Made by a program: the position numbers and the translations under genes
Assembly (NCBI GenBank): GCA_964035545.1
Contig: OZ037768.1
Coordinates: forward strand, 7,844,741-7,908,740
Length of the DNA stretch: 64,000 bases
Reading direction: 5' to 3'
Source of the DNA: Bugula neritina
Taxonomy: Eukaryota; Animalia; Bryozoa
Notes under the pieces: generated by a model
What the model was told of the DNA's origin: nothing
What the model saw: the letters and a program-made list of their open reading frames with translations, nothing else
Databases searched by the model: none
Part shown: positions 44,301-53,300 of the stretch, one piece after another
Layout: each line of letters begins with the position of its first letter
How positions within the stretch are numbered: position 1 is the first letter of the stretch

Positions 44301-47300
44301 GCCACCTCTGGCAAGTCGCACGGCTTGAGGCAGAACATTAAGAATTTCTCTAGTGACTCGAAAGGAACGAGTTTAAGCAACAACCATGATAAAACTAAAG
44401 GTATAAACTCTTACCATAATGATAGTAATGACATTTCCAATAGTAGTAAAATGTAGTTTAAATAGTTTTAAATGTAATTAATATTACCATATTATATATT
44501 TTGGCAATATGTTTGTACATTTTGTAATAACTATGACTGGAACTATTACTATTACGCTAACTCGCATCATTATCTTGAAAAGGACTGAGTTTAATTACAA
44601 CTGCTATCAACTTTATTCTTTTTGTAAAGGTTTTAGCAATTTTACTGTTAACTCTTATAATTTTCCAAAGGAACTAAATCAATTATCAAACAAGTTTTTG
44701 TGTGAATCATTTGTTCTGTATTTCACCTGTAACTTTGCGACTACATTCGTGCTATGTCATCATTTTACAGGCACAGATATGAAGCTAAAAGTCTCTCCTT
44801 TCAGTTCTGGTTTAAAAACAAGCGCATTTCGCACATCTCTGCCTGTGTTTACAAGTAAACTTCGTAACCATTATGGGCGTCAAGGAGGTGCCCTTAAGCT
44901 GCAGTGCAAAGTCGATGGGGAACCCAAACCTGTCATCAGTTGGCATAAAGAGGGCAAACCGCTGTCATCAAATCATAGAATACAGGTAATGCCATATTAA
45001 TTACACTTTATTTATATTTGTTAGAAAAACAAGTGTAGGAGAATTTAGTTGGAAAGGCATATGGGAACAATTTTACTGGGCAAATATTGGTGACCTTTTG
45101 AGTTTGAGCGGACTTTTTTCTTCATTGAGCTCTATTTATAAATTTATGTTTTGGTTCAATTTATGTTTTACAAAATTTGACTGATCAGATCAAGGTATTA
45201 AGTTGTAAAAGTTGTAGTTGCTTGCTGTATGCATAACATACTGTAAGGGGTTTTTGTTATCTCAGTTGGGAATCAGCTTTTGATTACATGTGTTTTGTGT
45301 TATATATGAGTGTGTGTAGTAATTTGGGCGGCGCAGGATTTCACCAATTAGTGATTATGTTTTACAACTTGTCTATAGTAAAATGGATATGTATTTGGGC
45401 TGTAGCAAAAACTATGCATTCTGGAATAAACTGGTATGACATTGAATTCACAGTGTGACATGGAATGGAAGAATTCACCACATTTCAATTGACCTCTTTT
45501 GCTATACACTATATTATGATGCTAATTATTAGTTTTTCCAAGTTAATTATAGCATAAACAACATAACTGTAACTGGTCTTAACCTAAATTATCGGCACCT
45601 TGCATATAGTTAGAGTATTTGTGAGATAAACCTTAGATGCCCTTTCAAGTAGTAAAACCATTTTAACTATTTTCACTTCACTCTTGCTTGTAGATATATG
45701 AGAAAAATGGAGTGCATTATTTTGAGATTACTGACTCAGTGAAAGAAGATTCTGGAAGATATACAGCGGAAGCAGTGAACTCTAAAGGCAGTGTCTGTAG
45801 TTCGGCTGATGTAAGATATTCGGTATTCTTGTGTTTAGTAATCTCTCAGAGTGTATGCTGATTCAATTATGAGTATAATTATATTTATATAGCACTGTAT
45901 TGCTAAAAGATTAGAACTTACTTAACAACTGAGAACATCATACAATGTATATTATGTTTATTTAGTCATGGTGTACATCTACTTCAGTAATTCACTACTG
46001 TGCAATTAATATGTGGCCAGTACTACTGCTACTGCTATACAAAACAGAATTTAATACCATTTAGTTAGTCAATAATACACTGGATGGAAAAACAAATAAA
46101 GATATAAAAATATATTTTTTATATCAAGTTTTCTGTCTATGTAAAATTTCCTGTGTCTCAGCTTCCTAAACCACAATTACTCAAGATGCCATTTGCAATA
46201 ATCAGAGGTGAATGTGTTTACCATGTAATGTAATACTTTGTAACTGATCTAACACATCTCATTGCAGTTTATGTTGATCTGAATATCAACCAATTATACT
46301 ATACTTACTACATATTGTGAATGTCTTACATAGTTGCATTTTGTCTATGCATTCAAACAAATTGTTTTTATAATTGGTGTCCAATCACTTGTTCCATATA
46401 AGTTTAATGTTTAAATATATGTGGAATTTTGGAAAAAAAGCTTAACAGTTATTTTATAATAGGCTATGTAATGTGGCAAATACAATAACCTCCATTTTTG
46501 CAGGTTGAAATAGCAGGGAAGAAACTTACTACGCCTGAGCAGAAAACTCCTTCCACAAAATTTACAAAAAAGACTGACCCTTCTACATCCGTATCTGATA
46601 ACATTACTAAGCAGGTTGGTACTGTTGCACATGTACACAAAAGAGAAGATATACAAATTTCAAACGCCAACTATGCAAGAGCTTTTACAAAAATTTGTAT
46701 TTCAGATTTTTTTATAATGATTAAATATTAAATATTGTAAATATTGAATATATATTATATATTATTCAATTAAGCCGCTGCTATTCCAAAAATGAAAGTC
46801 CCAATATTGTACAGGTTGAGGAGTTTCATGCAGAAGTCAATGAGGCTATGGCAGAGCTGGATGGCCTGTCACCATACTCGTCAACCTATCACCACACTGC
46901 ACACAGTGATCACACAGTAACCCCGCCTTCTTTCACTCTTCATCTCAAAGACTGTGAAGTTAAGGAAGGAGAAAGTTTAGATCTTATTTGTGCTGCTCAG
47001 GGTAAATGTTTATTGACTATTTTATTATTTTAACAAATCTTAAGACATTAAGTAATTTTTCCCAAAAACTTTTATATTATTTTTCAGAAAAAATGTCAAA
47101 TTATTAAATACTATTAATTATCTCAAAACATTAGTCTTAATTTACATCTTTCCAAATAAATCTCTTGCTAATAAGTTAATATTCAGAATCTTTATAAGCA
47201 TTCTTTGAGTATGAGCTAACTTGTCTGTTTACTTGTGCCAGGAGAGGATCCAGGTCTTAGTCACTGTGCCCCTCAGTTTGTCAAACCTTTAGAGGATGAT

Positions 47301-50300: not shown

Positions 50301-53300
50301 GGTGTAACAGTTTGTTTTTATTTTGATTAGCTGACACAACATTCACAGCAACAGGATTAGAACTCTAAATTCATTTATGAAATACAAGTTCTCAAGACCA
50401 GTTAGATAAATTCACAGCAATATTTATAAAATTAAGTACCAGAAACTAGAAATATCTAAAATAATATTTTAAAAGATGCCCCAGTTTAATTTCTTTTAAA
50501 TTACTTACTTTAATTATAAATTTTCATTTTTATTCATATCAGAATTGTATGTCACTTACAACTGTCATTCACTGTGCAAGCCCAGCAGGTGCTGATAATT
50601 CCAATGGCACATAACTAATGACTATTACAGAGTTGTCAGATGCTGAGATCAATGAAGGAGATTCACTTATAATCTCATGTGGTCAGATATCTCCAATAGC
50701 AACTTCTGTCACCTCACACACCGACTCTTCAACTGATGAACCAGTGTCACAGGCTGCGCAACTACCTCCAGCCATAGCCGTGGATCTGACGGACCTCGAA
50801 GTGACTGTTGGACAGAAGGCAGAGCTTGTGATGGAGACAACCGGTGAGTTAACATTTCTGGCATAAAGCCTTGGTTAGCTTTATACTGCTATATACTGTT
50901 AGTTGTTGATTGTTCACTTTTCATTTAGTTTTTAATTCAAATTGCCAAACACAATCAAATAAAAATGAGCAAAGATTTTAAAAGTATGATTTCAACATTG
51001 GGAAGTACAAATAAATTATGTAGTCAATAAGCGAAAACATATGTAACTAAAAATAAAGCATGTTAGCCTGACCGTTCAATTTTGATAAGACTTTAAAACG
51101 CCAGAGTACTAAAGTTTACTCAGCATAATATTCTAACAATGGTGGAGACTGGACACATCTTAAATGACTCTATTCTTTCAAACAGATGTTTGCAACTGCA
51201 ACTAGTGAAATTGGGACTATTTTTTATTTACAATTATTAGTTTTACTTTCGAATCAAGAGACAATAAGATAAATGCAGGATGTGAACTGAAAATGATGCT
51301 CACAAAATATTAAATTATAAAAAGAGTAAATTTTGGAATGCCGTCTTGATTCTTTAGGGCTATATTTTGTGTGTGAATATATTGATTTTGAGGTGGTGGC
51401 ATGAACCTGCTCGTACCTTTGTCCAACAGGAGAGGGAAAGCTAATGTGTGGATGGCTAGCCAATACCCCTTTAGTTATTTCCTATGCTCGTTATCTGTGT
51501 AGGCTCTTTACCTATGGATATAGTTTGGGTTCACAATGAAGATGAGCTTGCCCCTGATGATCCCGACTACGTTCAAACTTCTGAAGGTCATGTTCACCGC
51601 TTGCTAATATCGGCAGTATTCCCAGAGGACAGCGGTACCTACATTTGTGAAGCCTATAATGACTATGGCGAGGCTGATTCAGCTTGTGAGCTGCATGTGT
51701 TAGGTGTGTTCACATGTGCTTCTACTTCCTAGTTCCTACTTACTGCTGCTTTTCGCTGCTGGTCTGGTCTGTCTGTCTGTCTTTCTAAAATGCTATGCTG
51801 CCTTATTTAAAAACAAATTTACATTTGAAGTTTATAATGATATGAGCAACTGATTGTTTAAGAAAATATTCTTAAAAAACATGGGCTTTGGTTTTTTTAG
51901 ATAATGTGACTACAGATGTAAAACCTTTAGACCAAAAACCTCAAATTTTGCAGTCATTGCCAGAAGCTTTAACAATCGCTGACGACAGCACATTAGAACT
52001 TGTGTGTAAAATTAGCAATGTTAAACCTGAAGATGTCAGGTGGAATAAAAACCAAAGAATGGCTCGGAAAGGTAGCAGGTTTCAGGTAACTAGCTGTACA
52101 CTTGAAAAATTTATCAAAAGCAAAAAGTAAAAAAACTTCGACGAGGATGGGATTCGAACCCACGCTCCCAGAGGGAAATGGATTAGCAGTCCATCGCCTT
52201 AACCACTCGGCCACCTCGTCGTCATGCGAGGTCGGGCAAATAATATTAGTCAGATCTGTCAATAGTAATTGTTGAAATATTCAATTTGATTAGATATCAA
52301 CACAGCTGCGTTTATATTGATGACATCATGCTTATTACATGTATCAAAGCTACATTACCCAATATAATGTTTACCGCGCAGCGATGCGAAGCTATAGATA
52401 TAATATTTTCAAGCTATAAATAAATTGTAGGTAGCTAGTTTATCACAGTCTTTGTTACGGTTAAAAGGTGTGTAGTAGTCTCTAGTCTCTACCAGGGCTT
52501 CCTTTATTACCTACTACTTACTAACATCGAATTCTGTTCTATAATATACTTTTTAGTTATCATTTGACAACAATTATAATATAACTTTTTATTTTCTTTT
52601 CAGTTTTAATAAGTGGAACTGCCCACGGTTTTCAAATAACATTCTGGATGATCATGGTTTTGAAAATAGGATTAGATTAATAATTAGATTTTATTTAATT
52701 GTTATTTTATTTAATTTTAGTTTAGAGAGAAAGTTGGTGTTTTCATAAAATTCTGTGAGCAGAAATAGTTGTATATTGATTGATACAGTGCTAGATTTTA
52801 CAGTATTGTTACTTCCAATTGCTTTTCATCCCTAGAAATTAGTTGTTTGGCCATTTTTATAGTAACACAAATGGGTGGTAAATGTTGTGACAGGATCACC
52901 TCGGTGACTCTATCACATGCCAGAACTAAATGTTATCTTGTGATTAATAGGCTACATCTGAAGGCCAAGTGTACAGCTACAGAATAAGTAACTGCATGAG
53001 CATAGACAAGGGAGTCTACACTGTAACAGGAAGTAACGAGTTCGGAGAAGTTAGCTGCAGCTGCACCGTCTCTTACTCCAACGACAATCGGTATAGAAGA
53101 CTGCCTTCTAGACAATCAACCGAGTCCGAGAGGTAAATTGTTTCTCAGACTATTAGAGGTAGGTGCAGTGATGGAGAAATTGAGCAAAGCCTGTGTTTTA
53201 GATTAACAATGTAGCAAAAGAAGTTATGTTCTTTCAAGGTTTTCAACCCATGCCCCAAACCAAAATTTGATAATAAAATTAAAGAACTTAGGCTATCTCG

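Follow-up and report, generated by a model that had tools for sequence, protein, structure and literature searches.

The 64,000-nucleotide stretch of the Bugula neritina genome analyzed here (contig OZ037768.1 of assembly GCA_964035545.1, positions 7,844,741 to 7,908,740 of the forward strand; hereafter the window, in whose coordinates positions are given) is AT-rich (GC 33%) and carries on its + strand a very large member of the myosin light chain kinase (MLCK) family. Just N-terminal to the Ig-Ig-Ig-Fn3-kinase end of this gene lies an array of ten short units, each resembling the first strands (A-A'-B) of an immunoglobulin (Ig) domain of the I-set type, and behind them a single exon encodes the remaining strands (C to G) of such a domain. 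Comparison of the sequences indicates that these orphan half-domains very probably form a real coding array that has been conserved.

The domain order of the gene was taken from Pfam matches across the window and was as follows.

44.8-45.8 kb, + strand: I-set halves (Pfam)
46.8-51.7 kb, + strand: half-Ig array and core region (Pfam and translation)
51.9-53.1 kb and 54.06 kb, + strand: further I-set halves (Pfam)
57.5-58.3 kb, + strand: fn3 (Pfam)
58.9-60.4 kb, + strand: protein-kinase exons, three of them with Pkinase matches (Pfam)

Ig-Ig-Fn3 was found directly upstream of the kinase, as the MLCK/titin-like kinase family requires, and the nearest solved structures to the first exon of the kinase domain were those of twitchin, obscurin kinase and MYLK4. 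By eye, the frame that closes at 61031-61219 ends in a basic segment like the calmodulin site of MLCK, and downstream of it (63317-64000) lies a frame of Ig-like character; they are candidates for the calmodulin-binding autoinhibitory segment and the C-terminal telokin-like Ig of this family. Judged by its kinase matches and its Ig-Ig-Fn3 order, the host is a giant MLCK-family kinase gene.

The exon model of the array was built from three-frame translation and a check of the splice borders, and exons were concatenated locally for the reading frame and the unit table. Database searches and folding were run exon by exon, on single exons. Eight exons were placed between 46775 and 51703 (+ strand); all borders are GT-AG, the phases are compatible, and a single open frame runs throughout.

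E1, 46775-47001, + strand: spacer and unit 1 (46923-46991); phase-1 donor in a Gly codon; weak I-set match
E2, 47242-47411, + strand: unit 2, a linker rich in His/Asp and residues 1-12 of unit 3; phase-0 donor
E3, 48140-48299, + strand: remainder of unit 3 (Val replacing the strand-B Cys), then unit 4 behind a His-rich linker; phase-1 donor
E4, 48428-48579, + strand: unit 5 and residues 1-12 of unit 6; intron position and phase as in unit 3
E5, 49152-49264, + strand: remainder of unit 6, a long linker and the start of unit 7; phase-2 donor
E6, 49740-49975, + strand: remainder of unit 7, all of unit 8 and residues 1-6 of unit 9; phase-1 donor
E7, 50631-50843, + strand: remainder of unit 9 and, after a long linker, the divergent unit 10; phase-1 donor in a Gly codon
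E8, 51503-51703, + strand: the sole strand-C-to-G I-set core (Pfam positions 30-90)

An initial annotation, made from the window's letters, had described the ten units, and all ten were found on the + strand where it had placed them (translation and exon model). It had also argued that introns fall at differing positions in the units and that the array did not come from simple exon duplication. The latter stands; the former needs a correction, in that the four introns inside units occupy three different unit positions, those in units 3 and 6 sharing both position and phase. The cassette formed by E2-E7 measures 1,044 nt by exon coordinates, the length given in that annotation, and is a multiple of three. 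As had also been described, the equivalent Gly codon is cut in phase 1 at the ends of E1 and E7; it lies four residues past strand B, and these equivalent donors of units 1 and 10 were kept in at least two further species (contigs L001 and L012, introduced below).

Intron 2 contains a 57-nt inverted repeat at 47765-47953 (91% complementary, arms 75 nt apart), one arm of which includes a tandem repeat of 15 nt; the element looks like a small foldback element in its sequence.

The units and their single core

The units are 23-24 residues long and recur with a period of 33-51 residues (n = 10). They cover positions 1-24/30 only of the I-set profile (Pfam PF07679). Exons with units 1, 4, 5, 7 and 8 matched the N-terminal A-A'-B part of the I-set at E 0.0001-0.2; the unit-bearing exons scored 12-22 bits, under the Pfam gathering cut-off of 23.7 bits, and no I-set match was obtained in Pfam for E7, the exon of unit 10. 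A 9-residue sub-signature of the units was counted 9 times when the whole window was translated in six frames, each time within units 1-9, at a chance level of 0.01 per shuffle, and was absent in that translation from the ordinary complete Ig domains of the gene. The best solved relative of the unit profile was titin Z1Z2, in which the profile matched the N-termini of both Z1 and Z2 (Z2 residues 98-126). A search of the 216-Mb assembly found the array nowhere outside its own locus, and a feature-based search of the ESM Atlas returned nothing beyond I-set fragment clusters, with scores of at most 0.85.

Units 2-9 are 35-70% identical to one another in protein sequence, and their identities at the first, second and third codon positions are 0.58, 0.72 and 0.38, which argues that the copies are old and have been held alike by selection at the protein level. 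Recent gene conversion was considered as the source of their similarity and was ruled out by the third-position value. Unit 10 is without Phe, Glu-Gly turn and Cys, and shares 17-35% identity with the other units. The hydrophobic positions of strands A' and B were retained in every unit, unit 10 included.

The core exon E8 matched positions 30-90 of the I-set (E 2.8e-12, 47 bits; Pfam), and its best solved match was titin Z2, residues 134-192. Units and core thus pick matching halves of titin Z2, which fits one ancestral domain for both parts. The core exon encodes strands C-G only, with unit 10 as its obvious partner in cis. That only this last unit is completed had been proposed in the initial annotation, and the searches agreed with it, a C-G part being found in E8 only. 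Hidden C-to-G exons for each of the remaining units were ruled out on three counts. The strand-F pattern (Asp-x-Gly-x-Tyr-x-Cys) was absent from every frame between 47002 and 51502. Four C-G halves of the same gene were run by tblastn against the array introns and gave nothing better than E 0.3; elsewhere in the window these four queries do find one another. Lastly, contig L001 has four consecutive units in one exon and array introns of just 73-331 nt.

A tRNA-Ser(GCT) gene lies at 52138-52221 (- strand), in the intron dividing the Ig domain immediately past the core exon. This gene was kept just past the core exon in L001 (5942-6024) and in L012 (11074-11155), in a comparison in which synonymous divergence is saturated.

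Occurrence in other species and selection on the array

An exhaustive, profile-free search with E6 as query against 1.84 billion protein representatives yielded 32 matches. The long ones were ordinary full-Ig repeat proteins; the true relatives were six short open reading frame (ORF) fragments, all called on genomic contigs that derive from sequencing runs and marine metagenomes. The array was found to be present in at least four other species from marine metagenomes, with about 9 to 12 units in each. L001 (14.8 kb) carries a compact orthologue with the same eight exons, all introns at the same position and phase, and 12 units. A more distant relative, L012, has at least 11 units and one extra exon; in L014 the fifth and sixth exons are fused and the units are fewer, and partial arrays were found in L003, L004/L008 and L005. 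The unit count varies solely in the middle-to-late part of the array, and the counterpart of E6 holds 1 to 4 units depending on the species. A search with the core exon added eight further lineages at 76-89% identity, all as genomic fragments. One set of the relative contigs was derived from marine biofilm samples (PMC6355793), an origin that fits a fouling animal.

No annotated protein with this layout was found among the 1.84 billion representatives, nor was the layout found outside this contig group among the matches of the protein search. Word searches of the literature on half or incomplete Ig repeats and on bryozoan MLCK turned up nothing applicable beyond the strand-complementation precedents considered below and no account of such arrays, in line with the initial annotation, in which no described MLCK with this layout was known. 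Going by the profile matches, the array is a repeat region derived from, and still recognizable as, part of an Ig domain.

Synonymous sites are saturated between the window and L001 (pS 0.63-1.0); for units, linkers and core, pS was 0.75-0.99. The parts of the gene compared over this distance were conserved as follows.

Units: 62% identity, pN 0.24
Linkers: 32% identity with many insertions and deletions, pN 0.42
Core exon E8: 89% identity, pN 0.07
Kinase exons: 83-84% identity
Other Ig halves: 45-60% identity
Fn3 C-terminal exon: 63% identity

Of the exons compared in this part of the gene E8 is the best conserved, and it ranks above the catalytic exons of the kinase. An unsaturated comparison was obtained with L015, a close relative represented by a JGI metagenome contig, in which E6 is 95.8% identical to that of the window and the following intron 80.6%. 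Eight codons of E6 were changed, six synonymously and two by replacement; both replacements fall in linkers and none in units. The differences between units and linkers, and between E6 and its intron, argue that the array is truly coding and is held by purifying selection, as the initial annotation had suggested from motif conservation among divergent linkers. The linkers are indeed divergent overall, with the exception of those after units 2, 3 and 6, which are His-rich and conserved between species.

In the same comparison with L015, the first 50 nt of intron 6 (49976-50025) were 94% identical and the last 100 nt (50531-50630) 89%, with 78% in the middle. These conserved ends may represent splicing control elements or plain splice signals.

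Individual units were also conserved in their own features. An alignment of E2 from four species gave a mean column identity of 76%, and the Val that takes the place of the strand-B Cys in unit 3, together with the His-Gly-x-His linker that follows it, was invariant in all four of four species. The linker after unit 2 contains a conserved His/Asp cluster, and that after unit 6 a His/Ser run present in three species and diverged in the window. Unit 10 was conserved as its own type in 5/5 species aligned. Matched to L001 by motif alone, units 1, 5 and 10 each find their own single counterpart, and the middle units do not. The initial annotation had suggested that the units could be interchangeable; features kept unit by unit across species argue against free interchange.

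The His clusters directly follow the strand-B Cys (or Val), at 47335-47370, 48173-48200 and 49186-49210 in the window and at 2555-2590, 2994-3020 and 3764-3800 in L001. The His/Asp and His/Ser clusters could be candidate metal-binding sites.

Two further features of the window were noted by eye. Upstream of the kinase gene, an uninterrupted frame of 342 codons occupies 13851-14876 (+ strand), and the minus strand of 1-5350 contains exons with repeated Gly-rich motifs that look like those of an RCC1-repeat gene.

Interpretation and alternative explanations

Over its 374 residues the array carries a net charge of -45, and its S/T/P/Q/N content is 40%; the core has a net charge of -14 over 67 residues. 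The four-unit exon of L001 was folded by AlphaFold at a pLDDT of 47 with no secondary structure. E6 of the window was folded at a pLDDT of 65, and its sole strands pair the start of unit 8 with its strand-B end, in an Ig-like manner. The earlier idea that the units stack into a new, autonomous beta-repeat fold drew no support from these models, which point to local hairpins at most and give no sign of such a fold.

We propose that an I-set domain of the titin-Z2 type was split by a phase-1 intron after strand B, and that its 5' third (strands A-A'-B and linker) was multiplied within the gene. The outcome is about 350 residues in which nine surplus, hairpin-prone modules are separated by Ser/Thr/Pro/Gln/His-rich linkers and the tenth module completes the domain together with the core exon. 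The array would then act as an acidic, largely unfolded and extensible tether linking the N-terminal Ig region to the Ig-Ig-Fn3-kinase end. Its modules would fold only against the beta-sheet of a partner, which we propose to be the neighboring core or another protein, and would for this reason keep their Ig-type packing residues. To the observed anatomy, conservation and selection this reading adds a tether role and partner-dependent folding as predictions. We assign the combined explanation, a conserved array with a role as tether, a probability of about 0.5; the tether with conditional folding, taken by itself as the function of the array, is a tentative prediction.

Several points weigh against this explanation. 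A mere spacer would be unlikely to keep I-set structural residues, the strand-B Cys included, in almost all units at saturated divergence, and a spacer role leaves unexplained the higher conservation of the core exon relative to the kinase exons. The partner of the modules is postulated. The alignments available to AlphaFold were shallow (12-13 rows), so that low confidence is no proof of disorder. The database protein matches to the array were all genomic ORF fragments reading into introns, and no spliced protein was found among them.

Chance frames or decaying pseudo-exons, lying within a long intron that would separate unit 1 from the core, are scarcely credible as the source of the array. 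Single units do fall below the Pfam cut-offs, but frame, splice sites and intron phases were kept in species at saturated synonymous divergence, exon and intron identities in the close relative were 96% and 81% with replacements in linkers alone, and the sub-signature was found 9 times against 0.01 expected. It is possible, though doubtful, that E2-E7 form an optional cassette. Alternative splicing would then produce an E1-E8 isoform with unit 1 and the core joined as an ordinary Ig domain, the array being an isoform-specific length insert. The equivalent phase-1 Gly donors of E1 and E7, the divisibility of the 1,044 nt by three and the retention of the same exon ends in L001 and L012 are consistent with such splicing, as is the weak I-set match of unit 1 (positions 1-24) where E7 has none (Pfam). 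The ends of intron 6 in L015, more alike than its middle, show a pattern frequent beside regulated exons; they may equally be ordinary splice signals, and strong constraint at the protein level on E2-E7 argues that the long form is used. An optional cassette would be compatible with the tether of surplus half-domains and is not opposed to it.

Improbable, in our estimate, is a donor-strand reservoir, an idea raised in the initial annotation, in which any of the ten A-A'-B modules could complete the core, the docked module would set the contour length of the tether, and modules would be exchanged after force-induced unfolding. Ten compatible modules do face one core, all of them keep the A' and B hydrophobic positions, and the 89% identity of the core, above that of the kinase exons, is what a surface with many partners might look like; completion of Ig domains in cis or in trans also has precedents in obscurin-like-1/myomesin and filamin (PMC5222588). 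Strand B, however, lies inside the sheet, so that exchange would require near-complete unfolding. Unit 10 is moreover a separate, divergent type, conserved as such in five species, and units 2, 3 and 6 keep their own linkers or residues across species, which argues that the units are not interchangeable. A domain-completion ratchet, with the surplus modules serving as alternative partners of the core both in the protein and, for unit 1, by splicing, is likewise unlikely. If it were true, the kinase tether would be reset in length after load by re-completing the same Ig domain, for which there is no described counterpart. Quite unlikely, too, is a set of filament-binding repeats equivalent to the actin-binding DFRxxL motifs of vertebrate smooth-muscle MLCK, with one unit per filament subunit. 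The vertebrate motif, Asp-Phe-Arg-x-x-Leu, sits in a basic repeat and binds F-actin with a single motif for each actin monomer. Short tandem repeats occupy the same place relative to Ig-Ig-Fn3-kinase in vertebrates (PMC2196421), and the Phe-x3-Leu spacing is common to the units and DFRxxL. The Asp and Arg of that motif are nevertheless missing from the units, similarity to Ig strand A fully explains the shared Phe and Leu, and a net charge of -45 would suit a basic partner and not acidic F-actin.

Comparison with known systems

Ig domains are normally all-or-none folding units, and one would expect their fragments to decay or aggregate. In this gene, nine such fragments kept their packing residues at saturated divergence, beside a half-domain more conserved than the catalytic exons. 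The array may therefore offer a natural system for asking two things: whether a part of a domain can serve as a functional module, for instance through conditional folding, strand donation or sacrificial bonding, and in what way muscle kinases could have derived spring or tether regions from their own folded domains. It would mark a lineage-specific elaboration of MLCK in bryozoans, a phylum known for very fast retractor muscles.

With the titin-family I-set (PF07679) the array shares one domain type, the units corresponding to strands A-A'-B and the core to strands C-G; it differs in that nine of ten N-terminal segments are without any C-G part. The PEVK region of titin is a repeat-built spring segment that has neither Ig ancestry nor an alternating hydrophobic strand pattern. 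Both are charged, repeat-built and low-complexity-linked segments between folded domains of muscle proteins, but the repeats here are Ig-derived and have alternating hydrophobic strands. In the exon 4 and exon 6 clusters of Dscam, alternative exons, with identical flanking phases, each encode the N-terminal half of one Ig domain. The likeness lies in many tandem first parts of an Ig domain upstream of one exon for the remainder. In the present gene, by contrast, units share exons, linkers join them in frame and introns cut them. Shared exons and introns within units do not permit a one-at-a-time choice by mutually exclusive splicing, and Dscam-like use was ruled out on this exon structure.

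Vertebrate smooth- and non-muscle MLCK carries N-terminal DFRxxL and PEVK-like repeats, and the kinase is thought to bridge thin and thick filaments (PMC2196421). Short tandem repeats N-terminal to Ig-Ig-Fn3-kinase are common to both; in the present array the motif is Ig-derived and does not match DFRxxL, and the array is strongly acidic. Parallels in principle are systems in which a foreign strand completes an Ig domain, as in Ig3 of obscurin-like-1 with the myomesin linker, filamin Ig20-21 and chaperone-usher pili (PMC5222588). They show that a cytoskeletal Ig domain can be completed or masked by an outside strand, with mechanical effects. There, one missing strand is supplied by one donor, whereas the present array would set a surplus of putative three-strand donors before one acceptor.

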